From Macrostomum lignano (lineage: Eukaryota), in assembly GCA_002269645.1 (NCBI GenBank), contig NIVC01000903.1, positions 334,459-398,458 on the forward strand: a stretch of DNA of 64,000 nt, written 5' to 3'. Shown here piece after piece: positions 8,470-64,000 of this stretch. Position 1 is the first letter of the stretch. Every line of letters starts with the position of its first letter. The notes below the pieces were generated by a model. It did no database searches. It was not told the DNA's origin and was given only the letters and a program-made list of their open reading frames with translations. The translations under genes were made by a program, and so were the position numbers.

Positions 8470-9638
8470 TACACAAGTGTGACACAATGCTGTGATACAC
8501 AAGTGTGACACAATGCTGTGATACACAAGTGTGACACAATGCTGTGATACACAAGTGTGACACAATGCTGTGATACACAAGTGTGACACAATGCTGTGAT
8601 ACACAAGTGTGACACAATGCTGTGATACACAAGTGTGACACAATGCTGTGATACACAAGTGTGACACAATGCTGTGATACACAAGTGTGACACAATGCTG
8701 TGATACACAAGTGTGAAACAATGCTGTGATACACAAGTGTGACACAATGCTGTGATACACAAGTGTGAAACAATGCTGTGATACACAAGTGTGACACAAT
8801 GCTGTGATACACAAGTGTGACACAATGCTGTGATACACAAGTGTGACACAATGCTGTGATACACAAGTGTGACACAATGCTGTGATACACAAGTGTGACA
8901 CAATGCCATGATACACAAGTGTGACACAATGCTGTGATACACAAATGTGACACAATGCTGTGATACACAAATGTGACACAATGCCATGATACACAAGTGT
9001 GACACAATGCTGTGATACACAAATGTGACACAATGCTGTGATACACAAATGTGACACAATGCTGTGATACACAAGTGTGACACAATGCTGTGATACACAA
9101 GTGTGACACAATGCTGTGATACACAAATGTGACACAATGCCATGATACACAAGTGTGACACAATGCTGTGATACACAAGTGTGACACAATGCTGTGATAC
9201 ACAAGTGTGACACAATGCTGTGATACACAAGTGTGACACAATGCTGTGATACACAAATGTGACACAATGCTGTGATACACAAGTGTGACACAATGCTGTG
9301 ATACACAAGTGTGACACAATGCTGTGATACACAAGTGTGACACAATGCTGTGATACACAAGTGTGACACAATGCTGTGATACACAAGTGTGACACAATGC
9401 TGTGATACACAAATGTGACACAATGCTGTGATACACAAGTGTGACACAATGCTGTGATACACAAGTGTGACACAATGCTGTGATACACAAGTGTGACACA
9501 ATGCTGTGATACACAAATGTGACACAATGCTGTGATACACAAGTGTGACACAATGCTGTGATACACAAGTGTGACACAATGCTGTGATACACAAGTGTGA
9601 CACAACGCTGTGATACACAAATGTGACACAATGCTGTA
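8470..9638. repeat. 26-bp minisatellite (GTGACACAATGCTGTGATACACAAGT)n made of two related 13-bp halves
   Basis: Tandem unit visible; it explains the three 400-aa minus-strand ORFs. Confidence 0.97.
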
Positions 9639-34757: not shown

Positions 34758-37540
34758 AATACGCGTCTCAGCATGCAAGGTTAGAGCAGGGTGCGTCAGA
34801 TGGCGCGTCGCAGTCAGTAGCCCTCTTTCCGGATCACGTGACCCACCAGTTGAAGTCGCCGCCGGCGTAGGATAATGGACGCGCGCTGCAGCTTGGCCCG
34901 ATCGTATAAGGTCTCGGTCCCGATTCTCTCATTAGCTCGAAAGGCCGCACGGAGCAGCCCTGAGTGCGCCGAGTCTAGCTGCCCCTCCAGCGTAGCCGTC
35001 AGCGTCCACGTCTCGGCGTTGTAGAGCAGGACGGTTTCGACCACCGCCTTCCACAGCCGAGCAGGAGGACGGCTCGGATCGAAGGAAAGGCCGCCCAGGC
35101 AAGTCCTCTGCGCCGCCGGAGGTCTTCTCCACGTGAGGCACCAGACCGCCGAAGTAGGTGAACCGCTGGCAGCATGCGAGCCTGGTCGTCTGCCCGTCTG
35201 CGCCGCGGCACGTCAGGTCTGCTGGGATGTCGGCCGGCACAGTCGGTACCTCAGTCTTCAGCATGTTGACAACCAGACCGACGCTCGATGCCACTTCGAC
35301 CAGCCTGTCGATCTGGCGCTGGGCGCCTTCAATGGACGAGGACAGGAGGGCGAGGTCCTCGGTATCGCCAAGCACGCCCAGGCGCTTTTCGCCGTGGCGC
35401 CGACCGATGCGTCTGGGCAGCGGGAAGCCGTCGACAGTCGAGGGGAGTGGGGTCCGAAGCACCCAGTCCAGCAGCAGCACGAAGAGGAACGGCGCTAGCG
35501 TGTCGCCCAGCAGAACTCCTGATGAAGTGTCTAACAGGCCGTCTGCCGTCACCACAGCAGTTTGAGTATCGCAATAAAGCGCCATGACAGCGTCGATTAG
35601 CTGCTGGGGTATCCGGTAGGCTCGAAGGACAAAGGGAAGCGCGGCCCTCAACACCGAGTCAAACGCCTTTCGAAAGTCAACGAAGACAATGATCAGCGTA
35701 GACTGGCGGATGCGCGCCTCCTCGATGACACGGCGGAGTGCGAGGATCCGTGTCACTGTACCGCGTTGCGGCTGGAATCCGTTCTGATCGTACCGCAGGT
35801 ACGGGTCCAGCACCGACTGCAGACGATCGAGCAGCAGCCGGTTGAAGAGCTTTGCGGTGCAGGACATTAGCGAGATCCCGCGGTGGTCTTCTTTCCGCGT
35901 TGTCCCTGCCTTCTTCGGGATCGGCACGATGTGCGCGACGGTCCACTCGGTGGGCGCAGGAGCGCCGGCGAGCACGCGGTTCATGACGCCTGTGACCTGG
36001 GAGGCCACACAGCGGAGCCGCAGCGCTTCGACCGGGACTTCGTCGGGGTCGAGCACCTTGCCGCCAAGTGATTTTCGAGCGAACAGCACAACGTCCTCCG
36101 TGGTGAGTCCTTCTCAGCTGGGAGCGGCGTGTCCAGTGGGAGCGCAAAGCTGGCGTGCAGCGGCGAGCGGGCGCGTTTACAACAACACAACAACAAAAAA
36201 TACATTGTCAGCCAGTCAAGCTTGGGACAATGTCACATGGCACATTTCAAGGCCTGGGCGCGAACGTCGGTCGCACCGCTGGCAGTGTCCGGGGCGCCGG
36301 CATCAGCCAGCGGGCAGCGCGTTCACGATGCTGGCGAAGAAGTCGCGCAATTCATTCTTGCGCTCCTCCGGGGTGTCGCCGGCCAGGTTCAGCGCCACGC
36401 GCTTTTGCGCCCCGTCAGAGTCCGGACGGCCGTCCACACTGCGCGGCTCTTCGAGTCGGGGCCGGCTGAAGTGATGGTCCGGACGGCGTCGTCGACAGCA
36501 ACCTGCTGCCGCTTGTCTAGAAGGTGCTCAAACGCGTCTTCAGCGTCGCCCGTAGGCCGCCGATTTCTGCTGAGTCGCTCGATGTTGAGCCGCGCTTGCC
36601 TGATGGTCGGGTCGCTCTGTTAGACTGGCAGCGATTTCTGCGCTGGCCGCATCAGCGAGACCGTCTGCTCCGCAGCGGCTCTAACGGCGGTGCTGATGTC
36701 GGAATACTCCGCCTCGCGCTGGTCTCCAAGCGCGCCGACGAAGGCGCCCGCGAACTGACGCTTGACGCGGGTGTCCAACAGAGCGCGATAGTAGCGCCGT
36801 GGCCGCTGCTTTGGCGGTCGGTAGAGCTGGTCGCGGAGCCGCAAGTCGCAGAGCAGGAGTCGGTGGTCTGACCGGAGAGCCAGCGGAGCCATGGCGGCGC
36901 TCGCGAGTGCGAACCAGCGCATGATCGAGTTGCGCCAGTCTCCTCGTGGCGTTCCGCCCGCGTGCGTCCCGCCGCCTTCTCTTGCAGCCAGCAAAGGTGA
37001 CCAGGCGGGCAGGGGCTTGCGGAACTGGGTGTTCGCGGACACCAGGGTCACAGCCGGTCAAGCAGGTCCTCCAGTGCATCGGTGTTGGCGCTCTCGCGTC
37101 CCGCAACAAAGGGCGAGCGCTCTGACCTTTGCGGGACTGCGTTCAGGTCTCCGAGCACCGCCAGCGTGTTGCGGTTTGGCACCTCTTCCAGCTGCCCAGC
37201 CAGGAAGTCGAAGAAGGCGCGAGCCTCCTCGGGGTGAGCAGCGGTAGGTGCATACGCGCAGAACAGCCGAATGCAGTAGGCGCGCAGTCGCAGGTCGACC
37301 CGCATCAGTCGCAGGAACAGCGAAGTGCAATGCACGCGCTGCTGAAGGCGCGGTCCAATCAGTACGCCGACACCGCCCCGGCCGCGGTCGTCTGCCGACG
37401 TGTACAGGAGGCTCCAGCCGGCTCCGAGGTCCTCAGAGTGGAGCCCCGGCTAAGCCACGATAGAAACCCCCTGCAGCAAGATGAGGTCCAGCTGGACGAG
37501 AATGATGCGACGCCAGGGGGCCTTCAGAGTACGGCTGTTC
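34710..37540 (-). mobile_element. Decayed RTE-type non-LTR retrotransposon (APE endonuclease + RT) with a (TTG)n 3' tail
   Basis: APE fragments RLGTMNSRTL, FCAYAPT, LGDLNA; RT HRGISLMSCTAKLFN, QNGF, DFRKAFDS; C-terminal RRRLQLVGHVIR. Fragments lie in several frames, and QG and YADD are mutated (LLGDTLAP, GDTEDL). Confidence 0.9.
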
Positions 37541-44680: not shown

Positions 44681-46430
44681 TTACTGCGACTGGATCAGCT
44701 TTCTCTTCACCTTCTGCCTGACCCGGCGCCGCTCCGCCGCGCTAACTCCGCGCGCCCCTAATCGGCGCAGCACAACGCCGGCTGCCGCGGCCATCCGCGG
44801 GGCCACAGCGCGCAGGCCGGCAGTGTCCAGGCCGGCGATAGCGGCGGCCAAGCCCGGGTCGGCTCTGGCGGCAATAGCGTCGCCAATGAGCAGCCGGCGA
44901 GTCCTGTGGAAGAACAGGCGCTCAGCGGCGGCGTACAGTCGGGCGTCAAGGCTCGTGGCGGACTCGGCGATGGCCAGGTCGGCCCGGCTGGTGTTCAGCT
45001 GGCTGGCCACGGTTTCATCGTGCTGCCAGAACAGCCGGTTGAACAGCAGGCCGAGGCCGCGGGTGAGCTGGTACTGGTTGAGCACCTGTAGGTGACCGGT
45101 GGGAGCGAGTGAGCTTAAAATTCTTAGACAATCGAAATATTGAACATTATACAGTTCACCGAGTTTACAACCTACTAGCTCAAAGTTCACCGAGTTTACA
45201 ATCTACTAGCTCAGAGTTCACCGAGTTCACAATCTACTAGCTCAAAGTTCACAATCTACTAGCTCAGAGTTCACCGAGTTCACAATCTACTAGTTCAAAG
45301 TTCACCGAGTTCACAATCTACTAGCTCAAAGTTCACAATCTACTAGCTCAGAGTTCACCGAGTTAACAATCTACTAGCTCAGAGTTCACCGAGTTCACAA
45401 TCTACTAGCTCAAAGTTCACCGAGTTCACAATCTACTAGCTCAAAGTTCACAATCTACTAGCTCAGAGTTCACCGAGTTAACAATCTACTAGCCTCAAAG
45501 TTCACCGAGTTCACAATCTACTAGCTCAAAGTTCATTGAGTTCACAATCTACTAGCTCAAAGTTCACCGAGTTCACAATCTACTAACTCAAAGTTCACAA
45601 TCTACTAACTTAAAAACTACAACCATAGCTACCTGGTACTCGGTGAGGCCAACAAAAATCATTCGTCTCAGATTGGCCAGCGCCCCGGCCAGCATCTCCT
45701 TGCCGCCCAGGCACTCCCGGCCGGTCAGGTTGGCCAGCATGCGGCTCTGCCTATTAATAGCCGGATTGGTGGCGCAGCCGGCAAACTCGGCCAGCCCAAC
45801 GCCGTGCCAGTCGTCGCCACGGTAGCACAGCTCCGGCTGCGGGTCCATCGGTTTGCCGTCGCAAAACCGACGCGCCGCCTCCCAGGTAGCGCCGCGCCTT
45901 ACGTGACGCCACTCGGAAAAGAATCGGTCAACAGGCCGGCGCAGCACCGTCATGTAGTGCAGCCGGACGCCCGGGCGGAACCGATGCCAATTGGGCACGC
46001 AAGCCTGCAAAGCGGCCAGGCTGGCGTGGAGTCCGCAGCGCCAGCCGACGCTGCCGCGGCTGAACAGCCAATCGGTGTCGGCCGAATTCAAGCACAGGCA
46101 GCGCTTCCGACCGCGCCGACAGCGGCAGGGCAGGCCGCGCACGCCGGCCCGGACGAACTGACGATTAAGCGAGGAGCCGCCGGTTTTCTGAATGTGCACC
46201 AGCACCAGGGCGCTGCCGCCCTGCATTAGATCCGGCGGCGGCCGCGGCGGCCAGTCGAGATCGTCAGGGTCGGTGTCGACGTTGGCAGACGAGAGCCAGC
46301 GGCGATTGAAGAGGCCGGCAACGAGGTGACGGCTGCCACCATGGCGCCGAGACAGCAGGAGGAAGCAGCAGACGAGCAGGACGACAGCAAAGGCCGCCAA
46401 GCATAGCCGGTTGCGGCTGATGGCAGTCAT
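44681..46430 (-). CDS. hs6st: Heparan-sulfate 6-O-sulfotransferase-like type II membrane protein. Exons 46430-45633, 45085-44681
   Basis: N-terminal TM; PAPS 5'-site LVHIQKTGGS; WLFSRGSVGWRCGLHA; 3'-site YMTVLRRPVDRFFSEWRHVRRGATW; NPAINRQSRML; FVGLTEYQ|; phase-0 intron. Confidence 0.93.
45165..45612. repeat. 31-bp intronic minisatellite with shorter variants (HS6ST intron)
   Basis: Unit TCAAAGTTCACCGAGTTCACAATCTACTAGC. Confidence 0.95.
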
Positions 46431-48669
46431 CCAAGGCGGAGCTGCTCAACTGAGCTGTGCCAGCTTACAGCTTGCAGTGCCATCGGTGCTGCATAGCGAA
46501 CTTGGCAAATGGGCTGAGCTGAAGTCATTGTTGCAATCAAATATAATCAAGTTTGTAATAGTACTAATTAGATGACGAGGCATTTAGCCTCAATAAGACA
46601 CTCATAGTTACTCCTGCTATTTACTTAAAATTGTGTTAATTTTTCTGAAGGGTTTCTTTTACAGGTAAGTCGCATTTTGGTCAAAAAGTTGCATGCCGAG
46701 TGTAAATCAGGGGGGGGGGTTGCGCATGTTCCATCTTATTTTTTGCTTGCTTTGTTTGCATTAGTAGTATTGCATTAATTTATAAGAATAAAAATGAAAA
46801 CTTTAGACAAACTAAGGTTAATAGACTAAGTTTATGCCCTAAGGATTAAGTTTCTGCCTACAATCCAAAATTTTAGGCCATAGACTATGGGTAGCAGTTG
46901 CCTTGAGTATAGCATTTTACCACTTTGGATTAAGTTAACTGCTCCTAAGCTCAAACTGACTGCAAAATGCTATAGAAGCTAAAGCCTAATTTTTGTTTTA
47001 TAGAAACAATTTTGATATATTTTAATTAAAAAAGTTGTCAATATATTGGTAAACAAAAAGGCACTATTTAGAATATATAATTTTCTATTGACAAAAATTG
47101 TATCATTTTTTGTCCTATGCTATATTCTACTAATTTTTCCCCTTGCATGCTATTTTTCTAGAATATGCTAGTGTTAATGCATATTCAACCCTTTTTTGTG
47201 ATAAAATTTTCTAGAAAATACTTTCTTCCTGACTATGGTTACTAGCTACTTTTGACTATCAGTTAGGTATGCCCAATATTATACTAACTGCTCTTTCTTA
47301 TATTGATTATTTCTCTTTAATTAATATATCATATCTTTTTGTTTTATCTATATGACCAAACAATTAACATTAGTTTTTAAAAGTCTTTAAAAGTTTTATA
47401 GAAACAAAGTTTTTAAAAGTTTAAAAGTAAAACTCCCTATATGCTCTAAGTTATTTATTTTTTAAATATTTTAACTAGCTAGGATGTAGGTCTTAGTCAA
47501 TCAGCCCAAATATAAAATTATGCATATATAGAGGTTATTAGTTTATATGATATTATTGACTTTCTAAAAATAAATAATTCTTCAACCAAAAGTGTATCAT
47601 TGTTAGCAACAAGCATTTTAGCAAGGTCACAAACATCACAATGAGAAAGGAGCACAATATCTTTATGTTATTTCTATGATTATTTGGATTTGATATTGGA
47701 TAATAGATATACAATATTTTGTCTATTTTTTTTTCTATTGGCAAACAAAAAACTTTTTCTATGGGTCCTAGTTCTACAGTCTTAGGCCCAAGCCCGATTA
47801 GCTACCTAGGATTAAGTCATTAAGATTAGAAAGAATATTATAAATTGAAATATTTTTGTATTTAAGGCCATAAGGCCGACTCTTTGCTTAATAAATTTAT
47901 TATTTAATTATATTAAATCAACAAGAGTCAATGATTTTAAAATCAAAAAGAGGATTCAGAACCAGACATAAGGTGATTCAGTGATTTAGAATCACTTTAT
48001 GATGATTTCCTTTTGGTGATTTAGAAGGTAAAGTTAGTCAAGGTAGGGCAAGCAAAAGGACTTAGAATTTACATTGTAAAGACAAAGTGAACAGATAAGG
48101 TGATACAATATTACAAGAATTTGAAAACAAAAATAGTAGATAAAATAAAAAAATAATTAAATTCTAATTTAATTATTAAATGGAAAATAAACCATAGAGT
48201 ATCTAAAACAATAAATGATCAAAGAAACATAGTAGTAGTAAGTTGGCTCAGGCAAGAAGCCTGTTTGGCCAATATATTTTTGTGTATATAAGATTACTTC
48301 AGGAATAGGAGACAATATTTTAGCAATAGTTATTTAATTAATGATTAGTACAAGTTTTGCAATATGGTATTTGAAAGAATGCGGAAATGTTATTAACAAA
48401 ACTTGGACGACTAATGAAGCGAAAGAAAAAGCAAGGAGTTAAAAAAGTATTGCGTGAAATTTATGTATGTAGTTGGCGGTATTGCACAAAACAGCTTAGT
48501 CCTTATGTTATAAAAGTAAATTCTATAGATATTAATTAGATGACAACAAAATTGTATAAAATATAAAATTTGAAAGAGTGCATAGGGTTTTTTTGTGGTT
48601 TTTACGGATAGACTAAAAACAGGTACCATATGGCTTTGATGCAAACAACGGTTCATCCAAAATGCAATA

Positions 48670-49455
48670 GGCTCATTCCATATAAGCATGGTCGTAACAT
48701 GACAGGTTATTTTTACTTATAAAATGAAATCTAATAATAGAATATACTAAACCAATATTTTAAATGAAAGATTATTTTGTCTAAAATATATTTATAGAGT
48801 TTCATATAGATATCATCATTAGTATAGATGCTATTAAACCTTAAATGACACTTATGGTCGTAACGACAGGATTTTTGACATATAGAAACTAAAAGGTAAA
48901 AGTCTTATAACATTTTTCATTTTTGATATTTTGCAATACATTTTTAAAATTTGACTAAAAATATCTTTAGAAATCATACTCTTTTATTAGAATATATAAA
49001 CTCTAAAGGCAACAAAGATACAAAAGAAAAGGCAGCCTTATGGTTGTAACATTATGGTTGTAACATATTTTTTTCTGTCAATTCAGTAACTTTGAGGTAC
49101 TAATACATTAAAAATATAATAGATTATTTGGTCACCAATGCTTTTATCTGATGATGCAAGTACTATACTTTTATCTATAGTTTGTTTCAACCTTCAAAAG
49201 CTTTCTATTTGTTTTTAAAAGGTACAAAATCTTAATGATGTCTTTTGCTTCGAAAAATGTCCAAATTTTTACAAAAATGACTTTTTGCCAATTGATAACA
49301 TACTAATCCAACATTTTACCATTCCTTTATTCTTAGATTGTATATATTGCACAATATAAACATTTGGTAAAAAAATAGGCTAATTAGGCAATGGCAAGCA
49401 AAAATATTGACTTTTTTCTATTTTCCAAATATGTCTATCTTATATGGAATGAGCC
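48670..49455. mobile_element. MITE-like element, 786 bp, with perfect 17-bp TIRs and a 4-bp AATA TSD
   Basis: GGCTCATTCCATATAAG (48670-48686) / CTTATATGGAATGAGCC (49439-49455); AATA on both flanks; internal GGT(C/T)GTAAC repeats. Confidence 0.75.
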
Positions 49456-50643
49456 AATAGATTGTATGCATTAATCTGTCAATGAAGAATATCGAGTATA
49501 AGGATTGCTCATAATATTTGGCGATCATTGTATACATGTTAAATATTCTGTTTGAAGGCCTTAAAAACCATCTAACGACTTATGGTCATTAAATAGAATT
49601 TTTTTCTATAGAAATAGAAACTTCTCTGCAGAAATGTGCCAAGGAACTGTTCCAAGGACGTGCATAGTGATGGTGGGAATAAGAATATGCGGACTCAGTA
49701 CTTTACTGCTATACATGTATATAAAACATGCTGAATATTTCAGGTTAAAAAATTTAACTGTACATGACATCATAAATTTTAGCAGCTCCAGAGAGCTCTT
49801 TTCTGAGTCTTTTTTCATTCATTTGTGGCATACCCTATTTTATGTATCTGTGTGGCATCTAGAAGGTATTGGGGGAAGTATTTTTTCCTAATTTCTAGTG
49901 TTTGTGGGCACTCACTTAGGTAGTGAAGGATATCGGCTCTTTTTCTTGCTCCACAGAGTCCACGGCTTCCTGAGAGAATGCCTTTGGCGTGAGTTCGCAT
50001 TTTAGTTTCCGAGAAAGTTCGCATTTACGTTTCCGAGAAAATGACAACGTTAAATTTTCTCTTAATAGCATAATAACAATTTTTCCTTAATGCTTGGCAA
50101 ATAAGTGCACTATGTATCCAAAATGAAACACTTTATATTAAAATCGTTCTTAGGTTTTTTTAAACTTGCGAATAATAAAAAGATAATAAAGAATGCTTTT
50201 AGAATCTATTTTTGAAATACACGAATGAGCTCATTTCAGACTCGCAAGCAGTAGAATTGTTATCAAGCGATGGTAAAGCATACGTACATTAAGTAGTTAA
50301 CCTTCTTTGAAGTCAACGTACCATTTTAATAAAAGGATAATAATTCATTTACTATGTGGTAAAATATGATTTGATCTAGTTTTATTAATCCAGCTCCACC
50401 AGACATAATCGCAGAACTGACCTGAGATAGGCCTACACTTTTTTACAGTCACTGTTTACAGCAATAAGAATCACTGAAAAAGAAGTGCCGTCGTCTGCTT
50501 AATAGGGGCCTAATAGTAATACTTTTTATGTCGATAGGCTATCCTGCTAATTTGTAATTTTACAATCCATTATTTTAGCTTGCATTTAATTTTAAAATAT
50601 TTTTGAAAAGCAAAACCCTTTTAATCTTAGACTTAGGCCTACA

Positions 50644-50742
50644 ATGTCAAAGAGTGTATCTAAGTCTGTGAAGCCCATTAAAATAGTTGTAATTGGAAGT
50701 GGAGGTGTTGGCAAAAGTGCACTTACACTTCAGTTTTCAAAA
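50644..50742 (+). CDS. First exon of a Ras-family small GTPase (Ral/Rap/Ras-like G1 box); the rest was not found in the window
   Basis: MSKSVSKSVKPIKIVVIGSGGVGKSALTLQFSK followed by a canonical donor GTAAGT. Too short for the ORF track. Confidence 0.8.
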
Positions 50743-50799
50743 GTAAGTTATTTAAATACTTAATTTCTATATTGATCACAACAGTTGTTAAATCTTCTT

Positions 50800-52194
50800 G
50801 GCAGTTGTTATTTGTCTGGTGACCGGACGAATAGCGACATGGTTATTCGTCCGGTTACTGGACAAATAACCATTTCACTATTTGTCCGGTTATTTTACCG
50901 GACAAATAGCCATTTTGTTATTCGTCCGGTTATATATATATTACTAGTACTATCTACTTGTTGTAGGGAATATGTCTGGTTTTTAATGGCTTCTTTACTC
51001 ATATCTTGATCAATATATTGTTATACTAGTGTATGACTACACACGCGATTAGTTTCACTTAAAATTTAGCTTGCAGGCACGTTTGTCTTTGCACGACTGT
51101 TGAAACTGCTCAATGCTTATCTAGCATTTAGATTAGATAGTAATATCTATCTCAAAGGTATATGCATATCTCATCTATATTGCATACTGTATCGATGCAG
51201 ATGCCACGATAGTACTCTAATGGCGGTAGCTTTATGGTGTATCGTAGAAAACCAATTGGTATATTAATGATAAGTGCAACGTGCAGAATAATTGATCGAA
51301 AAGGGTAGGCACATGCGCATGTACCATGTGCATGTTGGAACGAGGAGGGAATGTAAGAGATTACAGATTACATGTGATGTACATGTACAGTCTGAACGTA
51401 TTTTAATGCTCGACTGGTCGGTTTTTTTATATTCCTAGTTGGCTCCTTTATAGTTACGATTTAGCAATTCATTGGAACAAAGAAATGCAGAAATTTTATT
51501 ACTAAAACAGTCGCAGATTACAGACTGTTATTTACATATCTTATAATGCCTAATGGAAGCAAATATGCAGTATAGACTTGGCTTTATTAAAAAAAAGCTA
51601 TTGTCATGTGTCTGTGGTAATAAATTTAACCAAGTAACTACTTTTTGAGTGTTGAATAAAGCCAATTTAATATACCAATTGGTTTTCTACGATACACCAT
51701 AAAGCTACCGCCATTAGAGTACTATCGTGGCATCTGCATCGATACAGTATGCAATATAGATGAGATATGCATATACCTTTGAGATAGATATTACTATCTA
51801 ATCTAAATGCTAGATAAGCATTGAGCGGTTTCAACAGTCGTGCAAAGACAAACGTGCCTGCAAGCAAAATTTTAAGTGAAACTAATCGCGCGTGTAGTCA
51901 TACACTAGTATAACAATATATTAATCAAGATATGAGTAAAGAAGCCGTTAAAAACCAGACATATTCCCTACAACAAGTAGATAGTACTAGTAATATATAT
52001 ATAACCGGACGAATAACAAAATGGCTATTTGTCCGGTAAAATAACTGGACGAATAGTGAAATGGCTATTTGTCCGGACCGGTGTTGACTACCATAGCAAC
52101 AGTTGCCAGGAGCCAATGAAGAGCTACGTGTACGTTTAACCGGACAAATAACCGTGTCGCTATTCGTCCGGTCACCGGACAAATAACAACTGCC
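50800..52194. mobile_element. Non-autonomous MULE/foldback-type DNA transposon, ~470-bp TIRs, 9-bp TSD
   Basis: Arms 50800-~51268 and ~51666-52194 are reverse complements (GGCAG...CTGCC); AATCTTCTT flanks both ends (50791-50799, 52195-52203). Confidence 0.88.
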
Positions 52195-52324
52195 AATCTT
52201 CTTTGCTTAGCTTTTAATACAGTTTTGTGACTTATATTATAAATTTTAAGAATAGATTAGGCTAGGCGCTAGGCCTAGAATAGAATTTTTAATTAATTAC
52301 TAATATATAAAATATATATAGAAA

Positions 52325-54215
52325 AAAAGTGTTTATCCCCATGGCTATGGTCCTATGCTAATAATTCCAATTTTATATACATCCGTTTGATAATTTCCAG
52401 CTTATTCTCATGGCAGCTTATTGAAATAGCTGCCACCATTCAAGTCTATAAGCCATGTCAATAATTCTAATTTTATCTACATGGATCCATGTCAATAATT
52501 TTCAGCTTATTCTCATAGCGAAGATTATGCAATTGTTTGTGTTTAGTTTATGTACTGACATAAAATTTTGCTACTATATTAGTTTTTTATTGTAGCATAT
52601 ATTGAATAGCTTTAAATAATAATTATTATAATGTTATGTGATTTTCCATTGAAGTCATAGTATAACAATGTCATTTAACTATATTGCTAATTGCTCTATC
52701 CAAAATTAATATTGTCATTATTATTATAGTATTATTAGCATTATTATTACATATTAAAATTTGAATTTTGTAAGCCTTGTTTACCTTGATCTTAGGGTTG
52801 TTTAGTCATTCTAAGCAAAGCTAGTAGCTAAGCAAATATTTAAAATTAACATTTTTAATGATGGAAAGTGAGGTGGGGGTGGAGAAGAACTTTCTTGGAA
52901 ATGGTTGCCTTTTTTTAAATTTGCTGACACTAGTGAGGTGGGGCAGATTCCTTGTTTGAATTGCCGCCGGTGTTGAGTTTGCACGAATAAAACCAGAAAT
53001 TGCGCAGACGAATCACAACAAAATTTCTTCTCCTGTTTTACTCCGACAGCTGGGTTCTGAAGTCCGGGGGAGGGTAGTCGTAATCGTAGCGGAGCGGTCG
53101 TTAGTGGCACGGTCGTTCAAAGCAGAGAAACACCGGAGATTTCTGACTCCAAAAATTAATGCGTCAATTATCTGAACTCATTACTTTCAGTAGGGTAGTT
53201 GCTGCCACCACCATAATTTACGTATTACGGAATGAATAAGTCTCAGAGCCTTCTTTGAGATGAGAACTTTGGTTATTTTATGCCCCACGGGCAAATGACT
53301 CAAGAAGAAAAACTATGGCTTTGGATTAGTGAATAAATATAGTTAATTATTGGAATTTATTAAGTTTTAGTGAGCAGGCTAAATTATTAAATGTTACTAA
53401 AGACTCAACTCAGACAAAAATGGGGCCGAGGCCGAAAATAGAAGGTATTAACTGTCTTATGCTAGCAAACGGAGCACTGAATTAATGAATAAATCAATAA
53501 ATAGGGAAAACACTAAAAGCTGACCAACAATAAACAAAATGAGGGGAAGAGAGTGAGAGAAAAACAAAAAGAGGAAGAGGAGGGTTAAAAAATAGTCATG
53601 AAAAATTCATTGCATTATATACAGAGGAATACATGGATATGCTGCGGGGACTCAGGATGGACATGCACTGGGGAAAGAAAATACACGCAAGAAGACATAA
53701 TGCAAGGTGGCATGGAATACATAAGCATAACAAAATGGATAAGCAAATCCCGTTGCGTGTGAATATACGCATGAAACGGGTTATAGACAGATCCCACCAC
53801 AGAAGTGACGTCACCCCAAAAATTGGGAATCACCACATGCATCATGCAAAATGTTCAAATGCCAAATTCAAGTGTTATCCATGGCAACCCGCCTGCCACA
53901 AAAGTTTTAACAAAGTACTTAATACTATTCAGTATTCAGTAGTTTATTTAAAAGATTTGTAAAATAGTGAAAACAAAAAGATAAGATTCATTTTAAGGTT
54001 TTTTAGTCTAATAAGCTGCCATGAGGATAAGCTGAAAATTATCAATATTGACACGGATCCATGTGGATAAAATTTGAATTTTTGACATGGCCTATAGACT
54101 TGAATGGTGGCAGCTATTTCAATAAGCTGCTATGGGGATAAGCTAGAAATTATTGACATGGATCCATGTGGATAAAATTGGGATTAGCGACATAGGACTA
54201 TGTGGATAAGTACTT
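52325..54215. mobile_element. Putative long-TIR element: ~200-bp degenerate inverted repeats around a ~1.5-kb core
   Basis: 52325-52520 is the approximate reverse complement of 54005-54215 (GCAGCTTATTGAAATAGCTGCCACCATTCAAGTCTATA). No TSD was recognised. Confidence 0.6.
53804..53888. promoter_or_regulatory. CRE palindrome (GTGACGTCAC) plus RFX X-box-like GTTATCCATGGCAAC
   Basis: Motif matches only; no linked transcript is known. Confidence 0.3.
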
Positions 54216-56232
54216 CAATATAGAAATGTATAGTATTTAGACTGCATATAGTCTAAATTAATAAGTAAACTACCTTATTAATGAATAGTTTTAATAGTAA
54301 TAACTAAAATTATATATAATATAATTGATTGATGCAAAGCAACTAAAGTCTTCGAGCCATAGCAATAGCAATAATATCTTTGATTAAGATCTGTCGCAAG
54401 GGATGTTTCCTTCTTAATAATATCCCACTGCTGTTACCAAAAGCTGTCCCAGGGCTCTTATTTATTCTTTGTTTAGCCTTACTTGCTGCCACCAAAGTTA
54501 TTACAGGGCTAAACTTTCTGTCTTTCTACCTAATGTACTTTTACATAAGTGTACTATTATTACTGGTAGTGTCTACTTATATTAATTGGTAGCATGTACT
54601 TCTGTACTTTTATTAGTAGCTTATATACTTTTATTGTACTTTCTGGTCTGAGCTGTCTTTTAGGCACTGTCTATCCTATCCCTATACTCCTCTAAAGATA
54701 TTATTATCAGTCCTGGGCGTTCCCGGGATCAGAGGGTCACAGCACACTTTGCTGGGTATTCTGCCCTGAGGCAGGTTTCTCAGACTCTAAGCCTGGATTT
54801 TTCTACCCTGTGGTAGGAAGTCTGCCTTCTAAAGGTGGGTTACTAGACTCCTAAGTCTAGGATTTCTCATTCTCTGAGAATGGACTGAACTCCCAATCTT
54901 GGGGCAACTCCTATGTCACTATCCACTACTTGAAATAAGTAACACGAGTGATCACGAGCCCAAGGCTGATTTAAAGCTTGGTCAATGTTCGAAACAATGG
55001 TACAAGACCAACAAACAAGAAAAGGTTCACAAGGTTGTTTATTTTTGCTCCCAGCTGACTCTTATTTATAGTAAAATTTTCCTAGTATTTAAAACAAAGT
55101 ATTAATACATAGAATATTCAGAATATTTTGCATATAAGAAATATTTTTAATATTCGCATAGTATAACAACAGTAGTACGTTTTTGGAAATGCAACTTTTT
55201 CTAAGAAATTGTTATAAAACTGGAGGCCTATTATAGATCCTTAATTTCTTTTGTATATCTAGTGTTGGACATGCACTAAAATGCAGAAGCCGATGTAGAA
55301 GTAGATGTAGAATATTTAATCTAAATTGCATAGATAGCTATTAGATAAGCTCACAAGCAATGATTTATAACCCTAAAAATATTGAAAACCACACCTTTAT
55401 ATTTTTTGACTACAAGTATGGCAAAATCATATTACAAAAATCCTACAAGTATGAATTCTAAATGGTTCAAACCGTTGAAAATTAGAACAGCTAGACTATT
55501 GGCAAACTTTGAATTAAAAAAATGGAGAAGTTCAAAATAGATTCAAAGAAAAATTTAACTTGCTGTAACTGCGTAAATACTAACTAATGCAATTTTAATG
55601 GCTGAGCTGTAAAATGAAGAACTTACTATAAATACTACCCCTTGCAATTTGAATGCTGTAAAATAAAGGACTTCACCTATCAATCTGATGAATATGTAAT
55701 ATTTATATACGATAAAATGCTGACAGAAAAGAGATATTTGGCAAAAATGAACCAAACTAAAGCTTTAACCAGCTTTAAAATTTAGAACACAAGTCAATTT
55801 GGCTTCAAAGTGGTGTAGCAGCTAAGATAAAGAGAAAACATAGAACAGTTTCAATTGACCAGCATATAAAAGTACTTTGCTGAAAAATGCAGAAATTCTG
55901 CAACAGACAGGGGTCGTAGAACGAATCGCACAATGTTAAACAATTGGTGGTAAATAAGTAGCTTAAGAAAAAGCAAACAGTTTCAAGGTATCGTATTCAA
56001 AGCCATTAAAGCATAGTAGTATGCCAAACAAAGTGCTAATAAAATGACCATAGAAAATCAGCACAATAGTCTTAAAGCACACTGAATGCCCTAAATGTCA
56101 TCCCAGCAATTTGAATGTCTGAGCTGTAAAATGAAGGACTTGCTATAAATGCCAATACCAACCCTGCTATTTAGAATGCCTGCTGTAAAATGAAGAACAG
56201 AACCAACAATATCAAGGGCAATTCGTAGTCTT

Positions 56233-58421
56233 TCACTTTGACTGCCGACTGCCGCCGGCTGTTTCGGCCTGGCGTTTCTTCGCTGCAGCCGACTGTCGAC
56301 TCTTTGCTGGATTCGCTTGATCGGCGGCTGTTTCAGCGGGACGTTCCTTCGCTGCAGCCGCCTGTCGACTCTTCGTTGGGTTTGCTTTCGCTTGATCGAC
56401 GGCTGTTTCAGCCTTGCGTTTCTTTGCTGCAGCCGCCTGTCGAGTCTTCGCTGGGTTTGCTTTCGCTTGATCGACGGCTGTTTCAGCCTTGCGTTTCTTT
56501 GCTGCAGCCGCCTGTCGACTCTTCGCTGGGTTCGCTTTCGCTTGATCAACGGCTGTTTCAGCCTTGCGTTTCTTTGCTGCAGCCGCCTGTCGACTCTTCG
56601 CTGGATTCACTGTGTTTGACTTGTGAGATGCTGCCGCTGGACCTCGGACAAAAGCAAGGAATGCCCCCGGTCCAATGATGTCCGGTTGCTGCATGTTGGC
56701 CAGACCAGAAATGATGCCACCAATCGCAAATCGTGCAGCCATGCTCATTGACTTCATTGTAGCTTGGTACAACTGGCGTGCAACATTGGGTTTGTGGCAC
56801 AGTCGGATCGATACTGCCTTTTGTTGATTTTCATCTAGGTACATTGCGGAGTACGTTTCAATGAATTTCCGATAGGCTGTATTAGTCACATGCTCGATTT
56901 TCGAATTCTTTGCTCGCTCCCTTGTCCATACCCTCGCAAAGCCACCCGTGCCAAGTGGGAAGAGCCTGTCAGTTGGTGAGGCCGTCTTTGCTCTCTCTTG
57001 AATGTAATTCGCGAGAATTTCGGCAACGCTGTCGACCGCAACTCTACAGGCGCCATACATGTTGGACGTCTTGTGCTCTTTAACGAAAAATTCGCTCTTC
57101 TGATCAGTCAGCCACTCAAGGCCTTCCTTAATGGTTGCATTAGTCGGAATGTCCGGCCTACTGGCGTTGCCATTCGAGAAGCACATTGAAGTGGTGATGC
57201 CAACAATGACGTCGTTGGACAAAATGTTTGATTCTGCAGCTGATTCTGCTCTAGTAATTAAGGAATGCACATGCGAGTACAAACTTTCGACTTCTTCTGG
57301 CTTCAGTAATTCCTTATCGAGAACGTTCCGCAATCTGGCATCATTTGGCCGACGAACCTTAAGTCCATACGCCTTGGTTAGGCGCTTTAGACGCTCTTCG
57401 AACTCCAGAAGGTAGCATTTCAGGCCTAGATTCCGTAGTTCAACAAAACGGCGTGCTCGGAAAAACGAAACTAAATGCGTTAACGCGTTGATGTATGATT
57501 GATCGGCTGATTTATTTCGCTTCGAGTCCTCCTCAACGAACGCGCTAACTTTATCACGAAACTCTTCAGTCAAAATCGAAAGAAGGTCCGTCAGCCCACA
57601 AGCTTTAGCTAATCGAGACAGAGCATCAGTGTTCTTCCGAATCGACGATGCCTTAAGTCCGCCTCCTTCCCACTTTGGTAGCCACTTGGCCAAGTCTGAG
57701 AGCTCGACCTCCAGCAAAGTCGCCTCCTTTTTGGCATCAATGGACTTTTTAAGCGCATCAAATTTTTCCTGGGCTTTCTTGGCAGCAGCTTCTGCAGGCT
57801 TGTAGTAATGAAACCGCACACGATGGGCAGTCATTGAGCGCTTCTCAAACAGAACATCACAATCTGGGCACTTCACCTTTCTGGAAGAGTCATCTTCAAC
57901 CTCTTGCTGATTAAATACTTTGATCTCTGCAACCAGATTGTCTATATTCTTCGAGCCAAGAATATCTTTGTGGCTTTTGTGTAGATGTTGACGGATCCGG
58001 GAATGGAAAATTCCATGTTGTTGTCCCTCGGATTCCGATGGCTTCTTGAACGGGCAAATATAATTCACACCTCGCTGCTTCGATGAATTTTCCTTACCGG
58101 AAAAGGCTGCATTAGAAGAACCAGCATCAGCGGCATCGGCATCAAGATCAACAGCGGCATTGGCATCAAGATTGACAACGGCAACATGACAACCAGCGGC
58201 GAGAATGGCATTTAAGTCTTCCTCGGAAATAGGGACCAGATGGTAATTGCCGTCCTGAAGAGTTCCATTTAGATGTTCAGGCACAACGAACTCTTGCTGC
58301 TGCTGCTGCTCAGGTGGCAACGATGGTAGAGTTGGCGGGTTGCCAGAAACTGGGTCACTTGTCCTGCTGTCCGAGCCAACACTGGCAGGAGTTGCATTGT
58401 CCTTGGACATTTTCTTATCGC
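56233..58421 (-). CDS. Terminal exon of a C2H2-zinc-finger plus tyrosine-recombinase-like protein with C-terminal 25-aa basic repeats
   Basis: CPDC-x11-H-x4-H finger; integrase-like motifs in order ASRP, HKT, TAYRK, LCHK, ARQLY; repeats of NPAKSRQAAAAKKRKAETAVDQAKA (75-bp period); acceptor ATGCAG|GC at 58421. Confidence 0.7.
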
Positions 58422-58714
58422 CTGCATCGAGGTTAGGATGAAGGTAAGATAAAATGTAATGAACATGATAGTCAGTGACTGCTAGCTATGAAAATATTTT
58501 CTTAAATAATAAATTTACATTACAGGGTATGCTTATGAAGCAATAGGATAATATATAGGTAAAGTAACCTTCCATCAGCCATTTCTGCAATTTAACAGCC
58601 AACTGTGATTTGAAGTATCAGATCTGCAATTTAATGTCCCCTCCCTGCTGTGATTTGAGTCCTACTTAATCAGTCAACCTGCAAATATACTTTGAATTAC
58701 AAAAATGTATTTAC

Positions 58715-61700
58715 CTGGAGAAGCAGTCAATTGCTCTCTCTCTCTCTCTCTCTCTCTCTGCACCGCACGTCTCGATGTCAGCTGAGCTGCAAGAGACGGG
58801 GGCGCTAGATGCGCCCCAGCCTGCGAAGAAGGTTGATGGTGAGGCTCGCGTCAACCAGGAGTGCGTCTTGTTCGCCGGGGCGGGCCGCGAACCCACGTGG
58901 GCAGTCGAAAAGAATGTGCTGCTCGGTGTCGCGAGCTCCGCAGTCCGGGCACACGTCGGAGTCGGACAGGCCGAGTCGGAGTCTAGTGGCGGCGGCAAGG
59001 TTGCTGCAGCCGGCGCGGAGCTGGTTGACCAGGACCTCAAATTTCCTCGGCAAGGTTGGGAGTCTTGGCCATGGCGCCTTACGGCCCCAAAGCTCGAGGT
59101 CTAGATCACGTCTTTCCCGGCAGAGGTAAGCGCTGGCTGCCATGATGGGGACACCATGGTCGCTCTGATCTGCGGTCGCCAGTCTTGCCGCCCTATCTGC
59201 GCGTTCGTTCATGGGGATGCCGCAGTGAGCCGGTATCCAGGTGATGCGGATGGAGTGATCGCTACTCTGGTTCCAAATTTCGGAGACGATTCTGCTGTTG
59301 CTGCGCTGGCTCGCCATGATGTTGTAAATGGCCGCCTGGGAGTCAGTGAAGATGTCGATACATTGATGCTCTCTGGTATTCTGGATGGCAAGCAGTATGG
59401 CTTGAAGTTCCGCCTGGGTGCTGCTGCAGATGTTCCCTGCAGCGCTGGTGACGACCCGACCCCAGCATGGGGTGATGATCACCGCTGCGCTGGTGCCGTC
59501 TGATGTGCCGCCGGCGGCCGAGCCGTCAGTCCAAACGCTGACCGGGTGGGAGCCGCGCTCCTCGAGGTACCTCAGTGCAGTATCGCTGCGGAGGCTCTGG
59601 GGCTGGCTGCGGCTGCACTGCGTAGCCAAACTGAGGTCGAAGGTGATCGCTTCGTGGGCCGTCCACGGCGGCTGGAGCTGCGGAGCGGGCTCCCTGGTGG
59701 GGCCGTTGAGCAGCCCCTGTCTGTCGAGCTCTTGGCTAACGCGGCGCCAGCAACCACGGTGTTCTCGCTGGTAGTCGTGGAGGACGGTGACGATGTCCTT
59801 TGGGTCTCTCGGTGTTCTCTGGTGGCTCTCAAAGGCTCGATTCTTCAGTCGTGGTCGGGTGTCCATTTTGGCGACCTGAAGTGCTGGAGTGTCCTGCGGG
59901 AGACGTAGGATTCTTTCTCTGAGCGTCGCACTACATTGTAGCACCAGGTGGCTGAAGGGCGACAGGTTCGCCACCGCAAGCAGGTCCCGGATGTGAGTAA
60001 GTTGGAGGCACCCAGTGATGATCCGCGCACAGCTGTGCTGTTGGCGGTCGATCAGCAGCTTAGAGCTGGCTGCAGTGAAAGACCCCCAGACCCCGCACGC
60101 GTAGTCGGCAGCAGAGCGAACGGTGGCGATGTAAGCCATGCGGAGGATCTGACTGTCCGCACCGGCCGATCTGGTAGCGAGGGCAGTGAGAGGTCTTCTG
60201 CGGGCAGCCATCTTTTTACGGATCTTTGATGCATGGTGGCTGAAACTTAGGCTGTCGTCAAGAGTGAGTCCCAGGAAGGTCGGTGTTGGATCGAAGGCAA
60301 GCTTGTCGCCGTTGATCTGGAGGTTCACTCTCCGTTTGCCGTTGTTTTCATTTGCCGCTAGAGTGAAGGTGGAGTAGCAGCATTTCCCAGTGCTAATGGA
60401 GACTTTCCAATCTCGGCACCAGTCGGCCACTGCATCCAGGGCTGGTTGGAGTTCTCTGGCACAGATGTCGAGTGTGCGAGCGGTCGCCAGTAAGGCCGAG
60501 TCATCGGCGTAGAGACTGAGGCTAACCAAAGGGTTCGCCTCGGCGACTGCTTGGGCTAAATCGTTGACATAGATATTCCACAGCGTGGGCGCTAGCACAC
60601 TGCCCTGTGGCAGACCTTCGCGGAAGACTCTGTTGCGGCTCGTGGCGTTAACCCAGCGGACTGCGTTGTGACGGTCCAACAGGAAGCCGCGGATCCAGCG
60701 GATGATGCGCTTGGGGATGCCCATGCGGTGCATTTTGGCATACAGGGCCAGGCGCCAGACTCTGTCATACGCTCGGCAGAAGTCGAGGAGGCAGAGGATG
60801 CTGCGTAGCGCCGGTAGACTCTCGAGGCCGTCAAAGATGGCTTGGCAGACTCGCGCGAGCTGTTCCTCGGTGCTACGACCGCGACGAAAACCAGCTTGAG
60901 TGGGCGTGAGGCCGCCACGGCTCTCCAGATCATAATTAAGACGAGCCAGAACCATGCGCTCCGCGCACTTGGCGATGCAGCTGGTAAGTGCGACGGGGCG
61001 GTAGTTATCCGGTGATGCGGCGTCTTTCCCTTTTTTCTGGATCGGTATAATAGTGCCAATTCGCCAGCTGGTTGGTGTTTTGCCCTCCCGCCAGGTGCGG
61101 TTGATGAGGCTGAGTAAGGCTTTGTCAGCGGCCGGCGGGAGGCGTTTAAGCATCTCGTTGGAGACACCGTCGGTTCCCACAGCCTTCCCTGATTTGAGAC
61201 ATCGGATAGCGGCGCGGAGCTCGTCGATCTCGAAAGGGGCGTCCGGGCCGTCTGTTTGGGGGTCACCCATAGGCGTGGTGGCCTCGTTCGCTTCGTATCT
61301 GATGGCCGAGTCATTTTTCCGTCTGGGGACTCGGCTAACTTCGGCGTAGAGTTGGCAAAAGAGTTCGGCCTTCTCTTTGTTAGTGCGGGCGGTGCGCTCC
61401 GGCGAGTCTGGGGAGGCGGCCCTGACGATGGCAGCCGGGTCCGGAGTTTTAAAACCATCGCCTCTCAGTGCGCGGAGTAAGCCAAAAATGTCCGAGTCCT
61501 GGCTGAAATTTGCCGCTTTGTCGAACAGGAAGGCTTTTTTCTCCCTCCGGAGACAGCCTGAGGCGTTGTGGCGGGCTCTGTTTGCGGCAATAATATTTTC
61601 TGGTGTCGGTTCTTTTTCTGCGGATTGTCTCGCGGAACGTGTAGCTTTGGAGGCCTCTTCGCAGGCGTCGTTCCAGAACGGCAGGCGTCTCGTCTCTTTC

Positions 61701-64000
61701 CTGGAGCTGCGCGGGATGGCAAGTCTTGCTGCGTTCAGGATGGCTTCGGCAAGGCGTGTGGCCTCTGTGTTTAAGGTGGTGTCGTTGCTTTCGGATTCTG
61801 CCCAGGTATTTAGCGACTCCCTGAAGGCTCCCCAGTCTGCCTTCTTATAGATCCAGCATTTTTGCCCGCAGTGACGGGTCTTTCCGGTGTTAGAGGCTGG
61901 GAGGCCGAAAACGATCGGCAGGTGATCGCTTCCCCAGTCTGGTAGCGTCTTCCAGGAGTCCGTGATGGATCCGGCAATGGTGCTACTACAGATGGTCACG
62001 TCTGGGCTACTGAGGCGGCCAGTACTGGGGCAGGTGCGTGTGTGGCAGGTGGTATTGCAGATGACGAGCCCATTGCGGGCGACCCACTCGTCGACAGTCT
62101 GGCCTCTGAGATCTTCATCAATGTGGCGTTCCCAGCTTCCGTGTGCATTGTAGTCGCCTCCGAGGATGACTCTACCAGTAGTTGGGAGATTGGTGAAGCT
62201 GGGTTGCCAGGTGTTATCGGGACGTTGGCAGCTGGATGGTGGTGCATAGATAGATGCTATCACGATCGGCTGCTGTCCTTTGAGGCGGATGCGGCAGGTG
62301 GCAACGTCCAGGAGGTCGTGTTCTCTATCGACTTTGAGTCTGTCGTACTGGACGTCATCGCGGACGAGCACCATAGTACCTCCCCGTCCTGTAATTTTTT
62401 TGTTGGTTTTTGGGATAGTGGACTGGGCTGGCGGTGGCGTGCTGGTGGTTTCTCGTCCGGATGCACTGGTTTGAACAGATTGGTTGTCTGCGCCATGCCA
62501 TGGTGTGAAACGGACGCTGCAGGCGGTACGGCCGCTGCGACATCCGGCGCACCAGTTTTCGCGGAGTCCTGGGAATCTCAGCCGGCAGCGCGGGTTGGTA
62601 CGGCGTCGTGTCCCGGCGGTGCCTGTACCGTCAGTGTCGGGTGGCCGATTTGGGTGAGCAGGTGTCACGACAGCGCGGTCATCGGGGCCGGCGTTATGCA
62701 CTCCGACTTCCCTGGAGGCCACCACGTATCCCCGCGGCGGGTTATAATCTTCTTCTTTCTTAAGCTTGGTTTCCTGAAGGAGTATAGCGGCGGGGCGCAG
62801 GGAGGCCAGCCTGTGGGCCAGCTTCGTATTACGGCTTTTGATGCCATTGCAGTTAAACTGCACGAGGAGCTCTTGGACCGGCTCGGCTTTGCGCGACGCT
62901 GCTCTCCTGTGTCTCCTGTTGCCGCCGCGGAGTCGCATGACGGATAGAAGGTTTTCGGAGTTCGACGCGTTCTCTTGGTCTTCTTCGCAGGCTCGGTGGT
63001 GGTACGGTCCGTTAGTTAAGAACAGGGGCACCTCTTGAAGGTCGGCCGTAGGCCCCCCAGTCAATTGCTGCTGTGGCTGCTGCTGCTCAGGTGGCAACGA
63101 TGGTAGAGTTGGCGGGTTGCCAGAAACTGGGTCACTTGTCCTGCTGTCCGAGCCAACACTGGCAGGAGTTGCATTGTCCTTGGACATTTTCTTATGGCCT
63201 GCATCGAGGTTAGGATGAAGGTAAGATAAAATGTAATGAACATGATAGTCAGTGACTGCTAGCTATGAAAATATTTTCCTAAATAATAAATTTACATTAC
63301 AGGGTATGCTTATGAAGCAATAGGATAATATATAGGTAAAGTAACCTTCCATCAGCCATTTCTGCAATTTAACAGCCAACTGTGATTTGAAGTATCAGAT
63401 CTGCAATTTAATGTCCCCTCCCTGCTGTGATTTGAGTCCTACTTAATCAGTCAACCTGCAAATATACTTTGAATTACAAAAAATGTATTTACCTGGAGAA
63501 GCAGTCAATTGCTGCTGTGGCTGCTGCTGCTCAGGTGGCAACGATGGTAGAGTTGGTGGGTTGCCAGAAACTGGGTCACTTGTCCTGCTGTCCGAGCCAA
63601 CACTGGCAGGAGTTGCATTGTCCTTGGACATTTTCTTATGGCCTGCATCGAGGTTAGGATGAAGGTAAGATAAAATGTAATGAACATGATAGTCAGTGAC
63701 TGCTAGCTATGAAAATATTTTCCTAAATAATAAATTTACATTACAGGGTATGCTTATGAAGCAATAGGATAATATATAGGTAAAGTAACCTTCCATCAGC
63801 CATTTCTGCAATTTAACAGCCAACTGTGATTTGAAGTATCAGATCTGCAATTTAATGTCCCCTCCCTGCTGTGATTTGAGTCCTACTTAATCAGTCAACC
63901 TGCAAATATACTTTGAATTACAAAAAAATGTATTTACCTGGAGAAGCAGTCAATTGCTGCTGCTGCTGCTGCTGCTCAGGTGGCAACGATGGTAGAGTTG
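58715..64000 (-). CDS. Tandem 150-nt phase-1/1 upstream exons of the recombinase-like gene: >64000-63938, 63642-63493, and 63198-63058 + 58723-58715 (split by the LINE)
   Basis: ~444-bp unit = exon (GHKKMSKDNATP...QQQLTASP) + ~293-nt intron, with CAG|GTAAAT donors and GATGCAG| acceptors. Confidence 0.75.
58736..63057 (-). mobile_element. Intact single-ORF non-LTR retrotransposon (APE-RT-RNase H-CCHC; I-group, Ingi-like), (GA)n tail, 12-bp TSD
   Basis: Uninterrupted ORF: LVQFNCNGI, LLQETK, GGDYNAH, SDHLP; QAGFR, GLPQGSVLAP, YADD; WTDGS, QAEL, TDS, WIPAHCG; CPDC...H...C. TSD CAGTCAATTGCT at 58724-58735 and 63058-63069. Confidence 0.95.

Follow-up and report, generated by a model that had tools for sequence, protein, structure and literature searches.

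A full-length LINE nested in frame in a tandem exon of a putative Crypton-like transposon of Macrostomum lignano

Structure of the LINE and its insertion site

The window analysed in this work is a 64,000-nt stretch (positions 334,459 to 398,458) of contig NIVC01000903.1 of Macrostomum lignano (assembly GCA_002269645.1, Mlig_3_7). Towards its end it contains a full-length long interspersed nuclear element (LINE), which lies inside a 150-nt exon of a tandem array, upstream of an open reading frame (ORF) for a predicted tyrosine recombinase. An earlier reading of these letters, the original prediction, had described an intact LINE in a 150-nt exon, in the same orientation and frame, with a 12-bp target-site duplication (TSD) and a resulting ORF of 1,460 aa. 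This description was borne out by the ORF, the Pfam matches and the empty sites detected in other copies of the host sequence. The limits 58715-63198, proposed there, are exactly those of the LINE-expanded exon: the acceptor …TGCAG directly precedes 63198 and the donor GT directly follows 58715. All coordinates are window positions, and the features are on the minus strand (Table 1).

The LINE was found to consist of a single ORF, without ORF1. The fusion ORF runs from 63187 to 58805; its aa 1-43 are encoded by the host exon and the next 40 aa by the LINE leader, and the first ATG of the LINE itself is located at 62938. Pfam matches were obtained for Exo_endo_phos_2 (3e-14) and RVT_1 (1e-32). 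The motifs QET138, GDYNAH344, GSDH419, YADD893, DGS1221 (DGS…E…D…D) and CPDC…HILFDC (1413-1429) were recognized in the translation. The element has no terminal repeats or long terminal repeats (LTRs), and the apurinic/apyrimidinic endonuclease (APE) is placed N-terminal to the reverse transcriptase (RT) in the one ORF. By its APE-RT order, TSD, simple-repeat tail and lack of LTRs, the insert is an APE-type non-LTR retrotransposon. The RNase H domain, the C-terminal CCHC motif and the single ORF suggest that it belongs to the RNase-H-bearing I/Ingi/Nimb/Tad1-like group, and its nearest database relatives are merely 30% identical. A second copy of the LINE (P0002, UniParc UPI0007A11279) is 94% identical, with the RT region missing. 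The APE domain holds a low-complexity insert of ~100 aa, rich in Pro, Arg and Thr (window ~62700-62360, aa ~160-275), between conserved blocks. Since this insert is common to P0002 and partly to the sequence P0003, it is a feature of the family and not damage.

The LINE is flanked by a perfect 12-bp TSD, AGCAATTGACTG. The first AG may belong to the tail, and the length of the duplication is therefore given as 10-12 bp; tail and target share 2 nt of microhomology. Three sister copies of the host sequence, on NIVC01000073 (L001), NIVC01000033 (L002) and NIVC01000217 (L003) of the same assembly, are empty at the exact site. Window segments 64000-63058 and 58735-55454 aligned to them at 98.8-99.5% identity, and the two flank alignments abut with a 12-bp overlap that corresponds to the TSD (e.g. 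L001 13158-13169). Neither terminus of the LINE was present in L001-L003. The insertion is proven, because the sister copies show contiguous empty sites which overlap by the TSD.

Table 1. Features of the LINE and of the surrounding host copy, listed in the direction of transcription
Feature	Position	Strand	Basis and remarks
Tandem exon copy, 3' end, cut by window edge	63938..64000	-	444/445-bp periodicity; ends …CTTCTCCAG^GT; array runs on past 64000
Intron copy, GT..AG, AT-rich	63643..63937	-	sequence
Intact 150-nt tandem exon (GCCATAAGAAAATG…CTTCTCCAG), ATG 63631, unoccupied target	63493..63642	-	junction LTASP^GHKK in P0045, P0001
Intron copy, 294 nt	63199..63492	-	sequence
Interrupted exon, 5' 141 nt; ATG 63187 opens fusion ORF; upstream TSD 63069-63058	63058..63198	-	sequence
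LINE, full-length single-ORF non-LTR retrotransposon	63057→58736, 4,322 bp	-	59.6% GC; Pfam and motifs; absent from L001-L003
LINE leader, 119 nt, starts GGGGGCCTACGG	62939..63057	-	open in ORF frame only
APE endonuclease domain, aa 109-426 of fusion ORF	61910..62863	-	Pfam Exo_endo_phos/Exo_endo_phos_2
Reverse transcriptase domain, aa 716-950, YADD at 893	60338..61042	-	Pfam RVT_1
RNase H domain, aa 1216-1337	59177..59542	-	Pfam RNase_H
C-terminal CCHC motif CPDCGARDTEQHILFDC	58901..58951	-	ORF translation, motif check
TAG stop (58807-58805), 45-nt 3' untranslated region (UTR), (AG)12 tail (58759-58736)	58736..58807	-	sequence
Interrupted exon, 3' 21 nt including downstream TSD 58735-58724; donor GT 58714-58713	58715..58735	-	sequence
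Last intron, 293 nt	58422..58714	-	sequence
Final exon; ATG 58410 opens 725-aa protein (56233..58410)	56233..58421	-	ORF, alignment, AlphaFold2 (AF2) fold
3' non-coding host part shared with L001-L003	55454..56232	-	homology ends at 55454, 460 bp before element's 3' end

The tandem exon array and its splicing

The tandem unit of 444 bp is composed of the 150-nt exon (GCCATAAGAAA-ATG…CTTCTCCAG) and a 294-nt AT-rich GT…AG intron. After the LINE, the exon resumes with AGCAATTGACTG-CTTCTCCAG and the donor GT. The array has seven units in L001 (10448-13602), five in L002 (6366-8597) and six in L003 (9660-12335); in the window it occupies 63058-64000. The units differ per locus, those of L001 ending in CTCTAG/CTCCGG and those of the window in CTCCAG. 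A few diagnostic single-nucleotide polymorphisms also set the window copy apart from its sisters, e.g. at 58421, where it reads GCGATAAG and the others read GCCATAAG.

The 150-nt exon is phase-symmetric, and the frame stays open over the exon-exon junctions (…LTASP^GHKKMSKDN…, the caret marking the junction). This property, claimed in the original prediction, is real, as the junction is used by two GenBank models: PAA87763 (P0045) and PAA91811 (P0001, 'hypothetical protein BOX15_Mlig028483g3' of Macrostomum lignano). The gene models of this assembly derive from RNA-seq-guided transcript assembly (PMC5730564). In PAA87763 the sequence …PQQQLTASP^GHKKMSKDN… occurs two times ahead of the main ORF; the model maps to L003 exons 10001-10144 and 10436-10588 and then leaps three units to the final exon. 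In PAA91811 an upstream exon ending …QQQQLTASP^ is joined straight to the final exon, and six units are skipped. The tandem exons are thus spliced in series and in frame, and are also skipped, in the annotated models of sister copies. The exact unit used is uncertain, as identical units can be confused in transcript assembly; the junction as such is secure. In the annotated transcripts, the serially spliced copies give a 50-aa N-terminal protein repeat.

The tandem exon was found to be a chimera. Its 5' 120 nt are identical to the beginning of the final exon, its last ~30 nt to the end of an upstream exon, exon B, and the switch point lies inside (CAG)n tracts found in both parent exons. This points to unequal exchange, with the (CAG)n runs of two adjacent exons as partners, as the origin of the array.

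The host element

A discrete segment is shared by the three sister contigs (L001 8481-16903, L002 4398-11906 and L003 7691-15644, the last of 7,954 bp). These copies of 7.5-8.4 kb are 99.2-99.8% identical to each other and their flanks are unrelated. One lies antisense in a TRAM_LAG1_CLN8 gene, another antisense in a UQ_con gene and another upstream of a Miff gene. Since near-identical copies with identical ends sit in unrelated contexts, the host is a mobile element. Each copy has CCCAT (CCAT in L001) at its start and at its end. Joined ends read …CCTGTAATGGAAAAGC[CCCAT]ACTTTCCAAATCGTTACAG…, with inverted GGAAAAG/CTTTCC arms flanking the putative crossover, and the circle junction would have the form …GGAAAAGC-CCCAT-ACTTTCC…. 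Five TTACAG motifs, at 18-21-nt spacing, are found at the 5' end and two inverted ones (CTGTAA) at the 3' end. The sister copies carry the recombinase gene only; they have no RT, terminal inverted repeats (TIRs) or LTRs, and the LINE is absent from them. Short terminal direct repeats of 4-6 bp without TIRs are the signature of Cryptons (PMC3212892). By these sequence features, the host is identified as a putative Crypton-like DNA transposon of ~8 kb that encodes a zinc-finger and tyrosine-recombinase protein, and it is not a cellular gene.

As in Cryptons (Goodwin 2003; Kojima & Jurka 2011, PMC3212892), a tyrosine recombinase is the sole recognisable enzyme, TIRs and LTRs are missing, the terminal direct repeats are short (5 bp), inverted arms stand beside the putative crossover and copies are found in unrelated loci. 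In contrast to Cryptons, the host protein has no Pfam Phage_integrase or DUF3504 match, and a family-conserved Thr stands in place of the first catalytic His. The N-terminal CHHC/C2H2-like zinc fingers, the amplified and serially spliced 5' exon and the C-terminal 25-aa repeats also set it apart. A full-text literature search on Macrostomum and Crypton revealed no account of the host element, and it is apparently an undescribed Crypton-like tyrosine-recombinase transposon.

The window copy is truncated at its 3' side or rearranged, because the alignment with each of the three sisters ends at 55454 and the terminal sequences are absent: a search across the window with the 5' and 3' ends of the host detected neither. 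Its 5' part lies beyond 64000. An exact look-up of two window ORFs in public assemblies, aimed at the sequence beyond 64000, found neither on record. The copy abuts an AT-rich region (46000-55454, 29-35% GC) which is unrelated to any sister flank; a deletion, a rearrangement or the assembly may account for this abrupt end.

The recombinase protein

The 725-aa protein of the final exon contains two zinc-finger-like motifs (aa 117-201), a catalytic region (window 57171-56764) and C-terminal 25-aa repeats. Its ORF is 94% identical overall to PAA91811, and ~98% outside the difference in repeat number. The repeat, of 75 nt (NPAKSRQAAAAKKRKAETAVDQAKA, window 56253-56608, minus strand), forms the C-terminus of the protein and is present in one unit more than in the GenBank paralogues.

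Pfam and PDB sequence searches with the protein, both as a single sequence and as a 14-sequence profile, gave no recombinase match, and a comparison of folds was therefore needed. The protein family comprises 22 cluster representatives among 1.84 billion proteins and has the conserved blocks GNAxRPD, HKT, TNTxxRxxxET and RLxHxxxVAxQxY. The AF2 model obtained from the 14-sequence alignment reached a mean pLDDT of 77.7; a model from the single sequence (pLDDT 40.6) was not used. The best PDB match in Foldseek was XerA (prob 1.0, E 4e-3), with the integron integrase IntI and poxvirus topoisomerase IB lower. The top 12 BFVD matches were all phage integrases, tyrosine recombinases or VLF-1. The E-values of the fold matches are modest, and their TM scores range from 0.22 to 0.50. 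The residues R418, K447, R514, H539 and Y548 are conserved in the family, with spacings of 29, 25 and 9, and the position of the first His is taken by Thr511. We take this spacing to be comparable to that of Cre and XerD. Based on the model, the host protein is predicted to have a tyrosine-recombinase fold. The label 'YR' of the original prediction is right by the predicted fold, the spacing of the catalytic residues agrees with it, and 'Crypton-like transposon recombinase' describes the protein better. The expression 'YR gene' holds for the recombinase; it fails for a host gene, the host being a multicopy Crypton-like transposon, whose window copy has lost its 3' end.

Interpretation of the nested insertion

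The locus is a case of a transposon within a transposon and not of a cellular gene that has co-opted a LINE. Probably, a young and intact LINE is nested here in a redundant tandem exon of a decaying copy of the Crypton-like element, in a recent and incidental event. Amplification of the 5' coding exon (150 nt) with its adjoining 294-nt intron would have yielded 5-7 or more tandem units. Via target-primed reverse transcription, a full-length single-ORF APE-RT-RNaseH LINE would then have integrated into the last internal exon copy, leaving the 12-bp TSD and a (GA)n tail. The same-sense and in-frame outcome would be a 1-in-6 coincidence, and it is visible because no stop codon interrupts the 119-nt leader of the LINE in the ORF frame. 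Three circumstances would explain why the insertion was tolerated, presumably as a neutral change: the redundancy of the exon, the separate ATG of the recombinase ORF in the final exon further downstream, and the presence of other copies of the element. If the window copy is transcribed, read-through fusion transcripts would be an expected by-product, with no evolved switch.

Some observations weigh against this interpretation. The fusion may be expressed at the window locus. The second LINE copy, P0002, is likewise annotated in frame with an upstream ORF, in a gene prediction of unknown support, and this annotation leaves room for a LINE family that may often ride on host transcripts. The target preference of the LINE was judged from two copies and is poorly sampled. 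In addition, the distant relatives P0005 and P0008 bear N-terminal 2A peptides, which shows that translation of ORFs fused to an upstream one is used in the wider LINE group.

The original prediction had proposed a splice switch: alternative splicing of the 4.5-kb exon would select between a host-leader::APE-RT-RNaseH fusion and the recombinase, both expressed from the promoter of the recombinase element. The fusion is in frame, and the context of its upstream ATG at 63187 matches that of the recombinase ATG. Moreover, phase symmetry is a property of the exon, and the sister copies both include and skip tandem exons. The short flanking introns (293-294 nt) could permit intron-defined splicing around so long an exon, and the LINE lacks ORF1 as well as an AATAAA within the 45-nt 3' UTR. 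However, a random exonic hit yields this arrangement with a chance of 1/6 (orientation 1/2 x frame 1/3), given that the leader is open in the ORF frame, and a stop-free leader was obtained in 27% of composition-matched shuffles. The annotation of P0002, in which an upstream ORF is again fused to the LINE, favours a switch; its LINE part begins at the same point as the window LINE (G[L/P]TADLQEV). That two copies start at essentially the same nucleotide speaks for a defined native 5' end of the LINE, and this shared start argues against the switch, as it implies an internal promoter or precise processing. P0002 was rejected as proof of recurrent in-frame fusion, since it is a UniParc gene prediction of unknown exon structure. 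Skipping of tandem exons, as the original prediction had it, does occur in the sister-copy models, yet it is not needed to restore the recombinase, because the ATG at 58410 lies in the last exon, 11 nt past the acceptor and downstream of the LINE. With 38.8% of M. lignano genes subject to spliced-leader trans-splicing (PMC5730564), the acceptor of the last exon could also take a spliced leader. The ORF of the inclusion isoform would terminate at 58805, which lies 90 nt upstream of the last exon junction; such an mRNA would not make recombinase and might be a target of nonsense-mediated decay. Furthermore, the window host copy has lost its 3' terminus, and three sister copies function without the LINE. 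An evolved switch is therefore unlikely. It is less probable still that the family has no promoter sufficient for autonomous expression and persists via in-frame landings in expressed, redundant exons of mobile elements, with the tandem array as a buffer and inclusion or skipping giving RT protein or recombinase from one transcription unit. If this were true, the composite, in which the RT, the RNase H and the tyrosine recombinase share one orientation and one promoter, would be a present-day case of the kind of fusion from which DIRS-like elements have been proposed to originate.

The insertion site itself could reflect a preference of the LINE, since the original prediction was right in that every tandem unit carries the identical target. 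A site-specific LINE would recognise AGCAATTGACTG/CTTCTCC and use the tandem exon array of a multicopy element as a safe haven. Simple-repeat tails are typical of several site-specific LINE clades, and the Xenopus Tx1L/Tx1D pair, a LINE within the tandem-repeat unit of a DNA transposon, is a precedent. Intact copies of the 18-mer across the insertion site number 7, 5 and 5 in L001-L003 and three in the window, where the regenerated site is counted among them. One occupied site thus stands against ~19 identical empty sites over four element copies, and the tail-target microhomology is merely 2 nt. Among other copies of the LINE, a single close one (P0002) was found, and its upstream peptide, …SLKKLKSLYTQRG^, is unrelated to that of the window. 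A homologue search with the LINE leader and N-terminus returned no other host::LINE fusion, not even P0002, probably by a limit of the word index. Recurrent specificity of the Tx1L or R1/R2 type is unsupported and partly contradicted, in a sample of two LINE copies, and we regard such targeting as very improbable. An assembly artefact, in which a LINE read was chimerically joined to the array, may also be considered: the highly repetitive M. lignano genome is difficult to assemble (PMC5730564), and the window copy ends abnormally at 55454. Nevertheless, both junctions are base-precise, the 12-bp duplication matches the single-copy sequence of the empty site, and the tail and the 5' end of the LINE are canonical. 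A misassembly would not produce a TSD, and the likelihood of an artefact is close to negligible.

Signals that could release the LINE protein from upstream sequence were looked for as well. No NPGP (2A) motif is present in the 1,460-aa ORF, and the leader peptide …DLQEVPLFLTNGPY, considered as a degenerate 2A, was rejected for its lack of NPGP. An Rfam scan of 58000-64000 at E≤10 revealed no ribozyme family and one chance-level match to a long non-coding RNA, although covariance models can miss divergent folds of the hepatitis delta virus type. The leader folds less stably than its shuffles (minimum free energy z +1.6).

Comparison with other systems

Nested transposable elements and exonic 'gene-breaking' L1 insertions resemble the window case in their insertion by target-primed reverse transcription, with a TSD and a simple tail, in a transcribed unit, and in the resulting chimeric ORF and split host transcript. 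Unlike L1 gene-breaking, the window case has a transposon as the host and an exon with further, redundant copies in tandem, and the frame is open over 1,460 aa. Tx1L in Tx1D (Xenopus) and R1/R2 in ribosomal DNA also sit in the tandem-repeat unit of a multicopy sequence. They occupy the same site recurrently, whereas the window LINE is found at one of ~20 identical sites, with another copy elsewhere.

The single-ORF APE LINEs that bear 2A (L1Tc/Ingi, Rex1, CR1, L2 and Crack; PMC3708506) share with the window LINE one long ORF and the lack of ORF1. A 2A peptide at this place frees the LINE ORF from any upstream translation product. In contrast, the window LINE has no NPGP, and a fusion would stay fused. 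The N-termini of P0005 and P0008 (~30% identity) read …GDIESNPGP (LLLRAGDIESNPGP) and …GIEANPGP (LLIRAGIEANPGP), and a Cys-rich region separates these peptides from the APE. This layout is 2A-PHD-APE, as in LINEs of the Crack/CR1 type.

DIRS, Ngaro and VIPER elements (PMC6681497) combine an RT, an RNase H and a tyrosine recombinase of like orientation in one unit, as in the window composite. The latter differs by its LINE-type RT with its own APE and TSD, by the absence of split or inverted long repeats and by the separability of its parts, as sister copies exist without the LINE.

As an event, the insertion is routine, since LINEs commonly nest in other repeats. Owing to the three empty sister copies, it documents cleanly, and with a date, a LINE family that is presumably active in an organism used as a model of regeneration, and the insertion can be used as a presence/absence marker. 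Of the by-products, the host element is the most useful, being a tractable recombinase element from an animal, for which the ends are defined and a candidate recombination site is available. The locus would be a natural test of a promoter-poor LINE exploiting host transcription if its fusion transcripts turned out to be abundant.

Other features of the window

More than half of the M. lignano genome is repetitive, and 15% consists of simple or tandem repeats (PMC5730564). Minisatellite arrays are dense at 700-45700, with periods of 8, 13, 15, 17, 18, 21, 22, 24, 31, 34, 39, 43 and 44 nt. Several of them make long spurious ORFs on both strands (e.g. 8404-9708 and 22515-23922). On the minus strand, the fragment 35466-36065 shares 28% identity with the LINE's RT region (tblastn E 6e-13) and presumably represents a decayed member of an unrelated LINE family. 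An inverted repeat of 408 nt (50860-51267 and 51667-52074, 98% complementary, with a 399-nt spacer) was found in the AT-rich region, and it may be a foldback element or resemble a miniature inverted-repeat transposable element.

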